From positions 164,310 to 228,309 of the forward strand of contig CDMY01000989.1 in the NCBI GenBank assembly GCA_001179505.1: a stretch of DNA of 64,000 nt. Direction: 5' to 3'. The translations under genes were made by a program, and so were the position numbers. The stretch is from Vitrella brassicaformis CCMP3155 (taxonomy: Eukaryota > Protista > Chromerida). The notes under the pieces were generated by a model. It saw only the letters and a program-made list of their open reading frames with translations, ran no database searches and had not been told where the DNA came from. Positions 13,413 through 22,461 of the stretch are shown here, in pieces; position 1 is the first letter of the stretch, and every line of letters begins with the position of its first letter.

Positions 13413-13416
<4 letters not shown>

Positions 13417-13552
13417 GTGTTGTGTTGTCTCTTGTAGTCGATGAATGCCTCAAGGTTGTCGGCCACCTCCTCCACACGACACACACTCGACTCGTCAAAT
13501 GCCACTGACCTGCCCCGCACCTGCACGCATCAATGGCCATGCAGATCTGCTG

Positions 13553-13586
<34 letters not shown>

Positions 13587-16500
13587 ACCGCTCTCTTGAG
13601 TGGCCCCTTGAGTTTGCCGAGGGTCTTGAGTGCATCCGCGTCACGGAGCAGATCGTTGCTGTCATCCTCTGACCACACGCACACACACGCACCGATGCAT
13701 GGCGATTCGTGTGTGTGGATGCCCCAGCACACTGACCAGCAAAGACGTCGAAGAGCGCATCGAGGAGTTCAACGAGGACGAGTGTGGGCGTCTTGCTGTC
13801 GGCCGCACACTCCAACACAATCCACAGAAACCGCTGAATAAACGAACCAGTGGCCGACACACAGAGATGAATCTCCTTGGCGTGTGTATCCGTCTGCTAT
13901 CCATGCCTGTCTGAGTGCCCTGTTGGGGTGGGTGACGTTGGCCGCGTTGAGCAGAACGTTGACCACACCAAAACACGCAGACCCCTACACAACACAACAC
14001 AGACGCACACAGAGAGAGATACCCACACAGACAGCTAAATATTGCGTGAGACGAGACTGCCACACCAACCAAACCAGCTGACCTGCACTTGAGCGTTCTT
14101 CCACATGGAGCTGACGTCTTCGCTGCTGCCGTCATGGGACCGCTCTCTCGCCCTCGACACGAACGGCTCGCGCGGCGATATGAACCACTCGAACAAACGG
14201 TCCAGCAACTGACGCAACTCATCGGCTTCGTGGGCGTCCATCTGGGGCTGCTGTGGCTGTGGCTGGGCTTGTGTCGTCGGCAGGAGGGAGGTGGCCTTCT
14301 TGGCTGCGCGCATCGTCAGCTGATAGTGTGGATGACATTGACACACACATGGCACTCACATGGTGGCTGCAGGTTTGTGTTGTTCCATGGGTACGTGTGT
14401 GGCGGCTTCCATGAGAGCGATGATGGCCATCTGCCCACACGGCGGCACTCGCACCCCCTCTGCCGTCTCGTCGGCCGCACTACTGCTGCACACACACACA
14501 CACACGCACGCACACATACGATATCGACACACACATGGACGGTGTGTGTGCGGATTCACCTGGCCGGCTGTGCCTCTGTGTCCGTCATGTCTGTCTGGTT
14601 GTCTGCGGCATCAGCAGGGGGAGCGCTGAAGTGGTGCGGTGCGGTGAGGTGGATGAAGCGCATGGCACCCGACAGACACCGGAGGGGCACATCCACAAAC
14701 CACGACAGTGAAGGGCCGGTGGTCCCTGCACCAATCAGTGCCCCACACACACACACATCCATGTGAATGGCGGACAACGCGGCGGGCTGTTACCCACCTC
14801 TGTCTGATGCCGTGAGGGCAGCGGTGAGTTGCAGTGCGGTAGCGAGGGTCTCCAAACACACAGACAGCTCCTCCCACCAATCCCTGCACATGAGGCATCC
14901 ATCCATCCATCCATCAGCCATTGAGTGCATTCCGGTAGATCTATACGTGTGCTGCGTGCAGATGGCCCGCAGCCAGGGGGCATCCAGAGAGTCGCACCAC
15001 CGCACACACGAACCACACAGCTGACGACATGACACACACAGACACATGAAGCGTGTAACAGTATCTGTGTGCTGTTGGCCGACCTCCGTGACGACGTGTT
15101 GGTCCGACTCGATGAACTGCGCCATCTGCTGCGACAGGTCTGTGCTGTCGTTGCCTCCCTCCATCGACACGTCGCCGTCATGCTCACCCTCAGTCGGCTG
15201 GGCGTCTCCTGACATTCGCACAGAGAGAGAGAGAGAGATACGCCACCAGTTGTGTCTGCTGTCTGTTTCTGTGTGCGGATGTTGCCCCCCTCCCTCACGG
15301 CTCACCAGAGATGTTGACGAGTATCTCGAGCGCCGTCTTGACTGCCTGCGCCTGCACTGCCCACTTGCCGCACTCCTACACACCATATCATCGCAGACAG
15401 CCAGTGGTTTCCCCCTCTCTCTCCGTGTGTCTCTCTGTGTGAGTATACCGTTTCCACTTCCTTGGTCCTTCCCTCCCTGGTGCCGTCCTGCATCTTCTCC
15501 CCTTTGCGCAACACCAACCCCTCACCCTCACCACCACCACCACCACCAACCGCACCACCACCCACAGCTGCCTTATCTCCTTTGCTGCCCTTGTCAGCAG
15601 GGGCTGCCGTGGCAGCACTCAGCAGGGGCTGCAGCAACACAAAGGGGTCGACAGACAGGGAACCAAACAGCAGCTGCATCGTGGTGTTGCTGAGGGCATG
15701 GGCGCCTGAGAGATTGTATAGGGCACCTGCAGACAGACAGGGAGATGTGTGTGTGGAATGTCTGAATGAACCAAGGACATCTCTACCTGTCAGCTGCACA
15801 GCGTGCAACATGCTTGTGTCGGGCGTGGTCTGCTGCTGCTGCTGCAGCCGCACGATGCACTCCTCGATCGACCGAATGCCCTCACTGCCGATGGCCGATG
15901 CCTAATCGACACATACACACACACACACACACACACAAGGGCATCCCTCAACCCTCCCTCCCCCCTGGCTGCACCAGACATGTCGACTCACCGCCTGTGG
16001 GTTGTCGTCAGTGACCACCAGCAGCAGGCCGGCCGCGGAGCCCATCACGAGGGCCTCCACACAATAGGAACCATCACCTGCAATCGACTCAGGGGGGAAG
16101 GAAGGGAGGGGCGTGCTTATGTGTGAGTGGGTGCCTTGCTCAGCTCAGCACAGCTTACCAGTGGCCAGCTGTGTGACGTTCTTCAGCAGTTGCTGCCCGC
16201 CCTCAGCCGACGATATGCGGCTCGTCACCTCGGCGAACTGACGACTACAGCCAGCAATCAGCAACCGACATGGAGAGAGCCACATCTTGCGTGTCGTCAG
16301 GTGTGTGTGGTTACCACAGGTGTCTGAGTGTGTTGAGTATGTGGTCGATGGCCAGTGAGTGCGCCGCCATGGTGTCTGCCGCAACGACCACCACGCCATC
16401 GTGCTTCACCTGACCCAAGCTCTGATGATCAACGGACGGAGAGAGAGTGAAAATGAATGGCATTTGTCTGCCTGATGTAGGGAACTCTCTCTGTGAATGG

Positions 16501-17087
16501 CAGTGCACCTCATTCATGGCGTCGATGAGGCTGTCAACGATGTTGAAGTGCTCCACCAGCTGGCGTGTCACCTTTTCTGGCGCCCATGACGTCACACCAC
16601 GGATCACCTGCACACACACACACACACACTCACACACACAGGTATAACCACGGTTGCACTCCTGTCCGGTCCGCACCAAAATAACGCAACGCACCTGCAG
16701 GGCGCCGAGGCGCACTTGTGTGTTGTCCTTGAGGAGCGGGAAGAGCATGCCCAGTGCCGATGTGTGATTGAGGAAGTAGTGGGCGGCCGGCGATGGGTCC
16801 GAGAGGATGTTGCTGAGAGCGATGCACGACAGCTCTCGCGTCCGCCAGTCGGTGCTGTTCAGCTGATGGAACCACACAGACAGCCATTAACAGCCATCCA
16901 TCCACCTCTTGTGCTTGCTGTATGGCCTTGCCTTTGTGACGATGGTCTCGTCAAAACAGTCGTGCCCTTTGGTCATGATCTCCTGCATGGCATGCTGCTC
17001 GGCCGCCTCCCGCAGGTCCTGACCCGTGACCATCGGCTGATGGGCTCCCTTGCCGGCACGACGACGCTGCCGCTGCTGCTTACCCAT
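13413..17087 (-). CDS. HEATR3: HEAT/ARM-repeat symportin HEATR3/Syo1-like (ribosomal L5/L11 import adaptor)
   Basis: Basic N-terminus MGKQQRQRRRAGKGAHQP, then LNSTDWRTRELSCIALSNIL, a central acidic loop, and C-terminal LLDALFDVFA|EDD..VADNLEAFIDYKRQHNT-TAG. These match the termini I recall for HEATR3/Syo1. Confidence 0.7.
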
Positions 17088-17630
17088 CAGAGATCTCGCT
17101 CTACTGATGGATGAATCGGGCAGACGACTGGCAGACGCGGTGGACGAGAAGAAGAACTCCGTGAAACCGCTCGACGAGAAAAAGCTCGCACAAAAAATGA
17201 ATTCTCGGCGAGACGGGACGGAGACGATGCTTGTGGAGAACACGTGGAACGAAATAGGATCCGCCGCTCTCCAAATCCTCCATTCTCCGCGGCGAGGCTC
17301 TCCTCCTTCTCCCTCTGGCTGCCGATTATTTTCCTGGTTATCTCCATCTTCATATACGGCACTAGCGGACAGCACTTCCACGGCGGCTTCTGAGGCCGGC
17401 CACTCCCCCTGCAGCATCCAGCCCAAGAACACTCCCATCCCCGGCCCCATCCAAAATGTCCTGCCCTTCGACGGCAACACCGAAATCGAGGAGGAGGCCA
17501 GCGATCATGTGAAGCGAGGAAACCGAGGACGTTCACACTGCAAGGAGCCATCAGGTAACGATTCACACCGTCAAGAAATCAAGAGCCTCGGGATTGTTCA
17601 CCGCTGCAGAGAGCGAGCCCACACAATTAA

Positions 17631-17815
17631 GCTGCTCATTCAGAGCTGCTCACTCGTCTTTATCGCGGTCTGAGAACAACTTGTCAGTCTGTGACGCTTT
17701 CGTTATTGGTTTATAGGCAGAGGAGCCGCAGAAGACAGAGGCGGCGCTGGCCGAAAATTGACAGCCCACACAACAAGAGCTGCTCATTCAGAGCTGCTCA
17801 ATCGCTGCTCAATCG
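17631..17815. repeat. 22-bp direct repeat gctgctcattcagagctgctca (17631-17652 and 17779-17800), with further gctgctca units, in the divergent intergenic region
   Basis: Read directly from the sequence between the HEATR3-like ATG (17087, -) and the OB-PARP ATG (17875, +). Confidence 0.85.
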
Positions 17816-17874: not shown

Positions 17875-20041
17875 ATGGCGACGGCAACGCCATTGGACAT
17901 AGTTGGGTTGCTCACGGGGCAAGGGAGGGAGTCCAAGAAGCTGCGGGTGGCAAAGATCATCAACAAGACCCCCGCTGAGCTCAAGTAAGCAATCCACGAG
18001 AGTTATCTGCATGTGTGCATTGCCAATAGCTGACAGATGATGTATGACGGCATGCATTATGCATGCAACTGTAGCTGTAAAGTACACGACGGGAGTCGCA
18101 CCGCCTCATAGCCACCGACCTGCCGGCGGCCAAGGACATCGATAAGGGGGACTGCATAGTCATCAAAAACGTCCATGTCCGAGGCGACGGGTAGGATTCC
18201 ATTGCATGCATGCACACATGTATGATGTGTATGTGTGTGCTCAGGCCTGGCAGGCACCTGCACGCCACCGCCGCTGAGCGGCAGCCCATGCTGCTCGCCG
18301 ACCTGCGGGTCGGGCGGTCGGCGATGCAGGTCATTGAGGCCACGGTGACGTCAATGTGAGTGCCTGCAAGCACAGGATGGGATGCAGCGAGGGCTTGCGG
18401 CCGCCATTTCATTCCTTCTCTATCACCTGATGTGTCTCACTGTCCAGATCGCAGCTGGGCACCTGCAGCAACGGCAGCAGCATGTTTTTCTCTACACTAA
18501 GACAAGGGCAGGTGAGCACAGAAAGCGCTGATGACCATTCGATGTGTGTGTCGCATTCATGACTTGTGTGCTGATGTCAGGAGGAAATAAAAGGTGTGCG
18601 CCTTCGGGCAGGCCGCCACCGCACACTACAACAAGATGGCCAAGGACAAAGTAAGATGGCGACATTCACGGACACACAGGAGGCCTTGTATTTCTTTATT
18701 GGTCTGTGTGCTGTTGACAGAAATACTGCCTAGCCGACTTCACCGTCAAACACAAAAACAAGTCAACACGATTATGGACAGAGACGTGGACGCGCCATGC
18801 AACACACTGTCTGTTTCTCCTTCCTCAGGCAATACAACACGACAGGCCATCGCTACGAGATATACCTCGAGACCGACACCATCATACGAGAGTGTACGCA
18901 TCCATCACATGATATGAAGCCCCCGTTGCACGCATACACACGGATGGAACTTCATGTTCGATGTCTCACTCTGCAGGTGCCCTCCCCCAGGCTGCCCCCG
19001 CCCCACCTGCTGCTCAAGCTGCCCCAGCCCCCGCTGCCGCTGGTGGTGCTGCTGCTGGCGCCCGACGACAGCGACAGATCCATGTAGGTTCAATCCTCAA
19101 ATGCCTCTTTGCCGAAATGAGCGTCTTCTCCTTGCTCATTTCATCAGATGGTCGCCGTTGTGGCTGTCAATGGCGTTGCTGCCGCTCCCCCCGCCCTGCA
19201 GGGGCCAGGGTACGTCCTGGAGGACGTGACGGCCGCGATGGTGGCGCACATCAGCGACCTCCTGCGCCGCACTCCCATACGCACCGCCGCCATGGCCACT
19301 GCCGCCACCTTAGGGCTCCCTCCTCAACACACCGGCGTGGTGCAGACAGGGCGATCGTTGCCTGCATTTTATATCGCGGTCGGTGTACGCAACGAGCTCC
19401 GATGTTCTGAAACCGAATGCTGTAGGGGTAAGAAAGGACACGGACATAGATCCGTCGACTAATGAGTACTACATGTCCCACGGCACGATGAACAATGCAC
19501 TGTGATGCGTCGACTTGTGTGTGTCCGTACGTGTGTGCAGGGGATTTGGGGCGGCCTCGACCCACCCATGAGTAGCGGAATGCTGAGACACGCATCATAC
19601 TTTGCCACCCAGGCCTGCAAAAGGTGAGAGAAACACGTGACAACCATCAGCGCAGTCATTCATTGATGTATGTCGTGCCCACCAGTGAACTCACTCACCT
19701 TGGTGTGTGTCGATGCAGCGCACGCGTTTACGCAGCCGGGCAGAGGCGGTCTGAGGGTCATGCTGCTCTGCCGCGTGACGCTCGGCCGCCTATTCGACGC
19801 ACACGGGAATACCCGCAACGATGCGCCGGCGGCACCGCACGGCTTCGACAGCGTGCTGGCGAGGGAGGGGAGTACGGCCATCCGACTGCACCACCACGAG
19901 GTGAGCTGAGCAGCACAGACACGGACACACGCAAGCAGGGATGTGATTGACGCGATGTCCCTCTCTCTGTGTGTGCAGATGGCCGTCTACGACGTAGCCC
20001 AGTCGTATGTAGAATACCTGCTGTATTATCGTGATGTATAG
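17875..20041 (+). CDS. RPA70-like OB-fold(s) fused to a PARP-family ADP-ribosyltransferase domain; splicing unresolved at 19.3-19.55 kb, possibly disrupted
   Basis: Spliced QVIEATVTSISQLGTCSNGSSMFFSTLRQGQEEIKVCAFGQAATAHYNKMAKDK..RYEIYLETDTII resembles RPA1 DBD-A. Downstream: DPSTNEYYMSHGT, GGLDP..RHASYFATQACK, VMLLCRVTLGR and HHHE|MAVYDVAQSYVEYLLYY-TAG, the PARP catalytic motifs. Confidence 0.65.
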
Positions 20042-20942
20042 ACGGGAGAATTCCTGTGAGACGGACGTGCCGTCGATGAGTAGAGGCGACTCATCTGCAG
20101 AGGACGTGAAGTGATACGACTGTCAACGTGGCTTAGTCGCATGTACGCGTGGATGAATTGGCCGGGGACACGTTCCGCTTCATTTGATTTTTCGATTCTC
20201 AACCATTTCCTGCAACGACATTTTCAACGACATGATTCGACTGATGCTGCCGCTCAAGACTGACATCAGTCCAGGTTCGGCAGAATGCAGACAGAGACGA
20301 TAGGACAAATCATGTCTGTCTGCCTGTCTCCCACGCGCAGACGACACAGGGCGCACTCTTCTGGCCTCCTCGGCCTTCGAGATAGCTCGCGTCTCTGTAT
20401 GCTGTATACCGTCTCTGCTACGATGGGCGGCGGCCTGGTCATCAAGGGGATCTTTCTGGGGAACAAGAAGGAGTTTTCTCAGGGGTGGCGCCAGCCATCC
20501 CTTTTTACGAAGAATTACCGTCTTTTCCGTCGGGTGTGGCAGACTTATACGAGGGGCATAGATGTGGATTTCTCCCAAGTCGGCCAGGACGGAAGCCCTC
20601 CATCATCGGATGGAGACGGTGGGGGTGGAGATGGTGGGGGTGGGGGTGGTGGGGGTGGAGGCGGGGGTCCTCCGGCCACAACCACAGCTGCCGCAGCTGC
20701 CGCAGCTCCCTCAGTTGGGACGTCCTTGCAGCCGGCACCTTCGGTCTTTTGGCAAATCTACTCAACAAAACATCGATAGACCGAGCCTATAGCGTAGGCA
20801 GTGCTCCTGACAAGAGGTGAGTGAGCGAATGAGGACAGATCAGCATAGCACTGAGCACAGCACTAGTAATGTGTCGTTCACTCTGTTGTCAGGAATGGAA
20901 ACGAGCAGAAGTGTGAGGGTGATTCATACCGCACAACCCCTC

Positions 20943-21362
20943 ATTGTGCATTCCTTCCAGCTGCTGTGCTGTTGAATTCTTCGCCAGCTGCTGCTGCCAT
21001 CGTGCCGCCGTGCCTCCCAAAGGCAAGTTGCTGCACGAAGCTGATAAAATAGGTACAGAAGGACCACGAGGAGAAGCCAGATGAGAAGCCGACCCGCAGC
21101 GATGATGCACCGCATGGCTTTGTGGGATTCCTACGGTTTAGCGAGATATTCGGCTATGTTCTGCACTTCAGCGCCTGCAACCACCGCACCAACGAGCACG
21201 TCACGCTCCAGCTCGAGAGCGTCATCCCCCGTGTGTTGGACTACCCCGAGGTGACTGACGGCCAGACGCACACCAAGGGCCCCCTTTATTTTTTGTGGGT
21301 ATTCATCGACATCCTCACCATCATCTGGCGCGTCTGCCCGAAGTAAGACCTGCACAGATGCA
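20943..21362 (+). repeat. Copy A of a diverged ~400-bp repeat with coding-like content (KPDEK..HGFVGFL..NHRTNEHVTLQLESVIPRVLDYPEV..IDILTIIWRVCP); inverted relative to copy B
   Basis: Aligns by eye with the reverse complement of 32716-33112, with substitutions and indels. Confidence 0.9.
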
Positions 21363-21431
21363 TGTTGTTTTTTTCCCAGGCCACCACAATGACGGTGTGA
21401 CACTGTATGTCCCTCAGGGAAAGGCCCCATT

Positions 21432-21641
21432 GCAAGCGCAGCTATTGATGCGGCACAGAGCAGTGGCATCATCCTCGTAGACGAGATCGACAAGATCTGC
21501 AATAATCAGGTGCGTGTCGGTCAGCGTTTTCCAGGCGTGTCTCTCCACTTCATGGCCACTCATCTGTTGCGCAGGCCGGCCAGGCACTCCAGCATGCGCT
21601 GCTACCCCTGTTGGATGGCACAGACATCAAGACGAGCCTCG
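21432..21641 (+). pseudogene. Isolated two-exon fragment of an HslU/ClpX-type AAA+ ATPase (Walker B region)
   Basis: Spliced AIDAAQSSGIILVDEIDKICNNQ|AGQALQHALLPLLDGTDIKTSLG resembles HslU AVEQHGIVFIDEIDKIC..GVQRDLLPLVEG..STKHG. No Walker A or other exons are seen nearby. Confidence 0.65.
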
Positions 21642-21935
21642 GTGAGGCGGAGGACGCATTGATTTGACATCTCATTTGTGTGTCCATTCAGGTACCGAGG
21701 TGGCGTCAGTGCTCAAAACACGGCAGAGGTTGCGGAGCGCCACTACCTCTACACGACCGGGAATGGTACAGAACCGCTCAATTTGATGCGAGGAACCCAA
21801 TGATTATTCACAACAGGTTATTAATGGGTTTGTTTGACTGTGTGTGCACATTCACTGGAAAGTCCGTCCACTGGAGAGGCGGAGACTGATCGGAGAATTC
21901 TGTCAAATCAGTTGGTTGGCCTTTCTTGCGTGCAG

Positions 21936-22461
21936 TTCAGAAAGGCATCTGCGGATGGGAATTTGGTGGAGGCCTTCAAACAGTACAACAAGATGAAAGA
22001 TGACTTCGTGAGTGAGGGAGGGCATAGGTGGCGGGCAATGGTGCGACAGGAGATGGCTCTCTTGCCTGTCTGTCTGTCTGTCTGTCTGCAGGCGGCCCTC
22101 GTCGCTCTAAGAGAGACTGAAGAGGCGGAGCATTGCTAGTGACCTACTCTGTGTTGGTTCGTTCGTGCAGGGCACCAGCACACTGGCTGGCAGTGCTCCT
22201 GCAGAAGCACCGACATCATCACCAACAGCGCCAGCAGCCGACCAGCAGCAGGGTGAGCGCGTTATGTCAGCAAGTGTCTGTGCTCGAGAAAAGAGCAGGC
22301 AGAAGGAGACGAAAGATGAGTGTGTATGTGTCTCTCCGTGCGCCAGGAAGGGCTATCGCTGCCTGCTTTTTATATCGCGGTCGGTCTTATATTGGTCTTC
22401 CATCGCTGCCTATGACCTGCTGAGCAGCTCAACTGAACGGAGAGGAAGGTCGATTACGTGA
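21936..22461 (+). other. Short exon-like fragments of an unidentified gene family
   Basis: Segments RKASADGNLVEAFKQYNKMKDDF, AALVALRETEE and RKGYRCLLFISRSV have GT/AG borders and internal stops. The last shares a ~31-nt motif with 19355-19385. Confidence 0.35.

Follow-up and report, generated by a model that had tools for sequence, protein, structure and literature searches.

Can one polypeptide couple the recognition of single-stranded DNA (ssDNA) to ADP-ribosylation? A locus in Vitrella brassicaformis CCMP3155 (CDMY01000989.1:182184-184350) raises this question. PARP1, PARP2 and PARP3 sense DNA breaks through zinc fingers and WGR domains and are regulated via a helical domain; the DNA-dependent PARPs that have been characterised all, to our knowledge, detect ends or breaks in DNA by means of zinc fingers and WGR domains. 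With an RPA-type OB fold as its tether, a PARP would constitute a direct ssDNA sensor. A preliminary description, made from the DNA letters, proposed such a fusion, with RPA70-like OB folds preceding a PARP catalytic domain with H-Y-E residues. Here, we followed up this proposal at positions 17875-20041 (+ strand) of a 64-kb window, the whole stretch of DNA that was analysed, which forms the final 64 kb of contig CDMY01000989.1; all positions below are those of the window. We conclude that the locus probably represents a degenerate copy from a Vitrella-specific family joining an RPA1 OB fold, a linker and a PARP domain; it is most likely a pseudogene and, failing that, non-catalytic. All peptides quoted in the preliminary description were found on the + strand at or near the positions that it gave, including the TGA at 19503-19505.

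The locus encodes a 353-residue annotated product, P0001, named "PARP catalytic domain-containing protein" in UniRef. Its gene model comes from Augustus with RNA-seq intron hints (PMC4501334). The pipeline labels genes with in-frame stops as pseudogenes, and gene models therefore tend to bypass lesions (PMC4501334). We set the annotated exons by mapping P0001 onto the window, and we used single exons or P0001 itself as queries. The model comprises 10 exons (Table 1); exons are short, and introns are 54-98 nt with GT-AG borders, apart from the 43- and 44-nt candidates discussed below.

An RPA-type OB fold

Profile and structure comparisons support the presence in P0001 of an OB fold homologous to DBD-A of RPA1. 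Residues 96-151 (exons 5b-7) match positions 237-292 of the NCBIfam profile TIGR00617 (rpa1) with an E value of 6.6e-8, a region that we take to be DBD-A from RPA70 numbering. Residues 38-150 match the same profile at E=3.1e-8, and exon 7 by itself matches positions 264-284 at E=0.026. In Pfam, the best match of the OB part is DUF223 (PF02721, an RPA-type OB family; E=0.0057, 17.4 bits against a cut-off of 24.6), and the PDB sequence search aligned P0001 to yeast RFA1 at E=0.65. Structural neighbours of residues 42-153 of the ESM Atlas model belong to RPA-subunit and DUF223 OB clusters, with DUF223 as the top OB cluster.

By profile score, P0001 is not an RPA1 orthologue. The full-length layout of RPA1 (70N, DBD-A, DBD-B and DBD-C) is not recovered: the match reaches 31.5 bits against the TIGR00617 cut-off of 334.2 and extends over 56 residues. 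P0001 shares with RPA70 DBD-A this local profile match and structural look-alikes among RPA subunit clusters, but no 70N, DBD-B, DBD-C or zinc-ribbon region was detected in it. The RPA-like DUF223 proteins of plants provide both its best OB match in Pfam and its top structural OB cluster, yet the Pfam match falls below the family cut-off. No DUF223 protein with a fused PARP domain is known to us.

Two details of the proposed OB architecture were not borne out. The N-terminal exons had been read as a second OB fold, but exons 1-3 and residues 1-100 of P0001 gave no profile, sequence or structure match (Pfam, NCBIfam and PDB), a weak negative given such short pieces, and the structural look-alikes of P0001 begin only at residue 42. 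The exons said to yield ..EEIKVCAF in consistent phase do not do so, as EEIK lies in frame 2 and VCAF in frame 0, split by one extra base.

A tankyrase-like PARP domain

Three signature patterns of PARP domains (E..x.HG[ST], YFA....K and xL.C.V.LG) are each found a single time when the 64-kb window is translated in six frames, all at this locus, on one strand and in PARP order. Judged from sequence, the resemblance of the locus to RPA1 and to PARPs is beyond chance. In the PDB search, residues 285-351 of P0001 gave an alignment to the catalytic domain of tankyrase-1 (E=0.001) in which the catalytic Glu residues coincide, P0001 matches PARP4 at E=0.0019, and 27 of the 33 matches are PARPs. Exon 12 by itself (phmmer against PDB) finds PARP4 at E=0.02, and 17 of its 18 matches are PARPs, including tankyrases and PARP3. 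Its catalytic Glu codon (19898-19900) aligns with the Glu of tankyrase-1 'AEYVIY', and exon 13 aligns to tankyrase-1 'EYVIYRGEQAYPEYLITYQ' with the C-terminal Y-x-EYL-x-Y aligned. PARP clusters are also among the structural neighbours of the ESM Atlas model.

The Pfam PARP profile (PF00644) reaches 11.8 bits (E=0.17) against a cut-off of 26.7 and covers positions 171-198 of 199 only, falling below threshold because P0001 lacks the middle of the PARP domain. The Pfam comparison suggested earlier for the spliced product, run here on P0001, points to DUF223, below its cut-off, but leaves PF00644 sub-threshold. Single exons, too short as pieces, had no match in Pfam, and exon 3, exon 9, the His segment and the Tyr segment gave no useful matches in PDB (phmmer). 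As for the proposed H-Y-E triad, all three codons and their motifs are present in the DNA and the Glu is aligned, but the His and Tyr codons are not in frame with the rest and are absent from P0001.

The closest comparison is tankyrase (PARP5a/b), the best match among solved structures. The shared features are LLCRVTLG against LFCRVTLG, the aligned E-x-x-V-Y..Q-x-Y-x-EYL-x-Y residues, and the HGT and YFA codons in the DNA of the locus. Unlike tankyrase, P0001 shows no ankyrin-repeat or SAM match at E<=10 and has an RPA-type OB fold at its N terminus, and the His and Tyr segments are out of phase at the Vitrella locus. With PARP1, PARP2 and PARP3 the likeness is one of concept, a nucleic-acid-binding module coupled to an H-Y-E PARP domain; Pfam finds no zinc finger, WGR or helical domain in P0001, and we infer that the OB fold would read ssDNA rather than breaks.

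One gene or two

The OB and PARP parts are likely fused in one gene, as the preliminary description inferred, and the gene model and frame logic make it likely that both lie on a single transcript. The public Augustus model joins the OB and PARP exons, and linker exon 8 connects them in frame. Exon 8 supplies the rest of the codon that exon 7 leaves open in phase 1; free of stops, it reaches a GT donor in phase 0, 64 nt ahead of the AG that precedes exon 9, and the frame stays open throughout. Furthermore, the linker and exon 9 differ between copies of the gene (described below) by +3, -3 and +33 nt, all of which keep the frame.

It is highly improbable that the fusion is an annotation artefact of two separate genes, an OB gene ending near 19083-19100 and a PARP-remnant gene starting at the ATG at 19148. 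Exon 9 does open with that ATG, the joint transcript is deduced from the gene model and frame logic, and intergenic distances in Vitrella are small, with a median of only 92 bp (PMC4501334). Against this stand the stop-free frame continuing through exon 8 from its phase 0 donor to the AG acceptor 64 nt on, linker indels that are multiples of three, and the union of both parts in the public model.

Damage to the reading frame

The preliminary description had suspected a damaged copy from poor junctions at about 19340-19430 and 19502-19540. Phase mismatches and skipped segments bear this out: both flagged PARP junctions are bad, but the list was incomplete, with a third at 19623/19719. In the OB part, the extra base noted above lies in the A run at 18586-18589, separating EEIK (18581-18592) from VCAF (from 18594). 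In the PARP part, frame 2 of exon 9 hits stops at 19459-19464, and reaching the His segment from exon 9 requires a 43-nt intron (19383-19425) or else a frameshift around 19430-19440, the latter being, in our view, the likelier ancestral state. Read unspliced, VRNELRCSETECCRGKK and then TDIDPSTNEYYMSHGT presumably give the usual N-x-x-L to HGT spacing, a lead only, judged by eye against tankyrase. At 19501, ahead of the TGA, the His segment leaves two bases over, and the Tyr segment begins at 19541 in phase 0. At its own end (19623), the Tyr segment also leaves two bases over (phase 2) where exon 12, from 19719, needs one (phase 1), so that the phase of the Tyr segment clashes with its neighbours on both sides. 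The annotated model skips both the His and the Tyr segments; P0001 keeps the catalytic Glu but is without both NAD+-pocket motifs and one OB strand.

An internal frameshift in exon 12 (a KSARVY reading in frame 1) was considered and dropped. Frame 2 aligns to PARP4 throughout, which places the mismatch at the junction 19623/19719. We also rejected assembly error as the source of the frame breaks. Logan contigs of two Illumina runs from different studies, X2 and X3, show 0 differences to the window at the PARP breaks (X2 over 19119-19535, X3 over 19198-19530 and both over 19506-19774), and X2 contigs retain the extra base at 18589.

At the end of exon 9, immediately ahead of the frame trouble, lies a 37-nt stretch (19348-19384) that recurs at 22349-22385 with 92% identity. 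The second site lies 3 kb downstream, past the annotated end of the AAA_2-like neighbour, and one of its frames reads GLSLPAFYIAVGLILVFHRCL followed by a stop. A short dispersed repeat, a templated insertion or gene conversion might account for the recurrence.

Further copies in the Vitrella genome

X3 contains the window form together with a second copy (an allele or a paralogue), about 3% diverged, over 18248-19152. The second copy is without one base at 18589, which places EEIK and VCAF in one frame. Its other indels, as seen in reads of X3, X13 and X14 over 18248-19211, are CTG added after 19006, 3 nt missing at 19036 (both in the linker) and a 33-nt insertion after 19200 (exon 9). Two further runs, X13 and X14, carry this second form, and X13 seems to hold only the second form. 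In both, the introns are retained, and the contigs thus represent DNA or unspliced RNA and are uninformative on splicing. Among the differences listed between copies, few fall in OB exons, more in introns and most in the linker, and four of the eight in exon 12 are synonymous.

Other contigs share with the window only 19039-19134 or only the sequence from 19958 onward, and the 3' flank of the second copy leaves the window at 20115. These partial matches and the diverging flank indicate that more copies exist. At 18590, 18869, 19039-19134, 19958 and 20115, contigs end in unrelated flanks, which hints that the Vitrella genome contains additional copies of parts of the gene, either more distant or rearranged. 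In one X2 contig, the 3' flank of the second copy seems to be connected to sequence from 18590 onward. Exact look-ups of five ATG-to-stop open reading frames (ORFs) in read assemblies turned up no variant copies on record.

One X3 contig joins 19303 to 19439, skipping 135 nt (19304-19438), and carries an extra G after 19272; it may derive from another family member. We tried this variant joint as a rescue of the frame, and in translation it gave no clean frame into HGT.

Weighing the readings

The reading that we favor, a degenerate copy, implies a family in which each member would be a single polypeptide combining an OB fold of the RPA1 DBD-A type, a linker of Ala and Pro, and a PARP catalytic domain that is tankyrase-like and of the H-Y-E kind. 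What is known of these domains suggests that the OB fold of an intact member would hold the enzyme on single-stranded nucleic acid, and that the PARP domain would use NAD+ to ADP-ribosylate itself or nearby proteins. At the present locus, small indels would have shifted the His- and Tyr-bearing segments out of phase and part of the OB fold out of frame. The likeliest state is a loss of catalysis, since the only open model is missing one OB strand as well as the NAD+-pocket His and Tyr. Several points weigh against this reading. The exon structure was derived from the gene model and frame logic, and the real splice pattern may differ. The pseudogene call was made by comparison with distant PARPs rather than with an intact paralogue, and may shift accordingly. 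Among the differences listed between copies, fewer letters fall in exons than in introns, and synonymous changes make up half of those in exon 12, a pattern that suggests constraint until recently, possibly still acting. Finally, a route search over all GT/GC-AG options did find a stop-free path via the His, Tyr and Glu codons.

That path would make the locus an intact H-Y-E enzyme expressed through unusual splicing, which we regard as improbable. It needs the 43-nt GT-AG intron 19383-19425, a 44-nt GC-AG intron (19497-19540) and, in place of 19718, acceptor 19755. Both the His and the Tyr segment do keep a coding-like GC content at third codon positions (GC3) of 0.67-0.68, but each of the splice choices removes conserved core residues, about 5 after HGT and 12 more (AHAFTQPGRGGL) that are aligned to PARP4. 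Moreover, the remaining introns of the gene are 54-98 nt long with GT donors, the GC donor (GCACTG) is weak, and acceptor 19755 is without the TG/pyrimidine-rich tract present before the other acceptors. Somewhat less improbable, though still unlikely, is a functional pseudo-PARP, in which the 353-residue product would be made and serve as a non-catalytic OB protein with a PARP-derived C-terminal module, comparable to PARP13 or TASOR. Its model is stop-free with good GT-AG sites (donor GTAAGA at 19428 to acceptor 19718), conservation between the copies is higher in exons than in introns, and exon 12 is enriched in synonymous changes among the differences listed. Pseudo-PARPs are, moreover, documented: PARP13/ZAP and TASOR have a PARP fold without NAD+-pocket residues attached to a nucleic-acid-binding part (PMC11377751). 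However, those proteins keep a complete fold with substituted residues, whereas P0001 loses whole core segments, with about 50 PARP-core residues absent, so that formation of the fold is unlikely, and its model also loses the OB strand EEIKVCAFGQ and exon 2. AF2 run on P0001 without an alignment gave an unstructured model with a predicted local distance difference test score (pLDDT) of 33, which is weak evidence, and the word-index search found no transcript-derived protein sharing P0001 words.

Relatives and significance

The pairing of an RPA-type OB fold with a PARP domain is unusual and apparently undescribed. We found no description of an RPA-OB/PARP fusion or of Vitrella PARPs in the literature and no described protein with an OB-PARP layout, in agreement with the earlier statement that the architecture was not known from characterised proteins. 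One preprint names "OB-folds" among PARP accessory modules without detail. The occurrence of the fusion in other alveolates or elsewhere outside Vitrella, for which a search had been proposed, found no support in database and metagenome searches with these short queries. An exhaustive phmmer search of exon 12 against 1.84 billion representatives returned only P0001 and a spurious repeat protein, a short query with which distant relatives could be missed. Word-index searches with P0001 as a whole, its OB region and its PARP region returned only P0001, the whole-protein query being swamped by the low-complexity linker. Scans of JGI metagenomes and IMG/VR likewise gave no relatives, with short or low-complexity queries that could miss distant ones.

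The recurrence of the layout in Vitrella, the frame-preserving linker indels and the presence of at least one decaying copy together mark the family as young and dynamic, in contrast to a conserved core gene. If an intact member were active, it would offer a simple system for the coupling of ADP-ribosylation to replication stress or foreign ssDNA; the damaged copy alone is unsuited as an experimental subject. As a speculation that we hold to be doubtful, the locus may belong to a lineage-specific, multi-copy, fast-changing Vitrella family of ssDNA-sensing ADP-ribosyltransferases, as a recently inactivated or a regulatory non-catalytic member, with a turnover that would be more in keeping with a conflict-driven role, such as defence against mobile elements or viruses that have ssDNA intermediates, than with housekeeping repair.

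Features of the locus

Two exons call for comment beyond Table 1. Candidate cassette exon 2 has an open frame, GT/AG borders and a coding-like GC3 of 0.77, compared to an intron GC content of 0.50; with its 108 nt, the frame is kept whether it is included or skipped. Profile searches of this single exon (Pfam and NCBIfam) gave no family match. Exon 5 has in-frame alternative acceptors at 18593 and 18611, of which the annotated model takes 18611. Across exons 3 and 4, IEATVTS at the end of the former is continued by ISQLGTCSN in the latter.

Table 1. Features of the OB-PARP locus in window coordinates, with the extent of each exon in the annotated P0001 model
Feature	Position	Strand	Extent in P0001 model	Sequence and remarks
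Tandem duplication, 147 nt	17631..17777	.		Just upstream of start codon; 17616-17656 ~90% identical to 17763-17804
Exon 1	17875..17984	+	17875-17984	ATG 17875; MATATPLD..KLRVAKIINKTPAEL, contains KLRVAKII; ends phase 2; donor GTAAGC; identical to P0001 exon 1
Candidate cassette exon 2	18083..18190	+	outside	TRRESHRLIATDLPAAKDIDKGDCIVIKNVHVRGDG, contains DKGDCIVIKN; 108 nt
Exon 3	18245..18355	+	18245-18355	PGRHLHAT..MQVIEATVTS; its end opens the RPA-like OB fold
Exon 4	18448..18511	+	18448-18511	(I)SQLGTCSNGSSMFFSTLRQGQ; OB strands 1-2 by eye
Exon 5, frame-broken	18581..18650	+	18612-18650	EEIK 18581-18592 in frame 2; VCAFGQAATAHYNKMAKDK 18594-18650 in frame 0
Exon 6	18721..18761	+	18721-18761	KYCLADFTVKHKN(K); within the TIGR00617 rpa1 match
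Exon 7	18829..18893	+	18829-18893	QYNTTGHRYEIYLETDTIIRE(C); last OB strands
Exon 8, Ala/Pro-rich linker	18977..19083	+	18977-19083	ALPQAAPAPPAAQAAP..RRQRQIH; connects OB and PARP parts in frame
Exon 9 (annotated extent)	19148..19427	+	19148-19427	N-terminal part of the PARP domain, GYVLEDVTAAMVAHISDLL..AFYIAVGVRNELRCSETECCR; annotated donor 19428
His segment	19426..19501	+	outside	Frame 0; VRKDTDIDPSTNEYYMSHGTMNNAL, includes NEYYMSHGT; His codon 19479-19481
Tyr segment	19541..19623	+	outside	Frame 2; 83 nt; GIWGGLDPPMSSGMLRHASYFATQACK, includes HASYFATQACK; YFA 19598-19606
Exon 12	19719..19900	+	19719-19900	PARP core strands, AHAFTQPGRGGLRVMLLCRVTLGRLFDAHGN..PHGFDSVLAREGSTAIRLHHHE; MLLCRVTLG from 19760; HHHE Glu codon 19898-19900
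Exon 13	19979..20041	+	19979-20041	MAVYDVAQSYVEYLLYYRDV and stop 20039-20041; MAVYD..YLLYYRDV; last PARP strands, Pfam PARP positions 171-198

Flanking region

In contigs from X2 and from X3 alike, 17630 is followed directly by 17778, without the tandem duplication that lies upstream of the start codon, indicating that the number of 147-nt units varies between haplotypes or copies. Upstream, a SYO1-like TPR gene (13413-17087, - strand) stands head to head with the OB-PARP gene, with 788 nt between the starts. Downstream, a 135-aa AAA_2-like model (21081-22139, + strand) resembles a piece of a longer Clp/HslU-type ATPase reading (..ILVDEIDKICNNQ..). Just past the end of the OB-PARP gene, a short Gly-rich repeat at 20600-20680, a GGGGD/GGGGG coding run, lies within the ORF 20285-20779.

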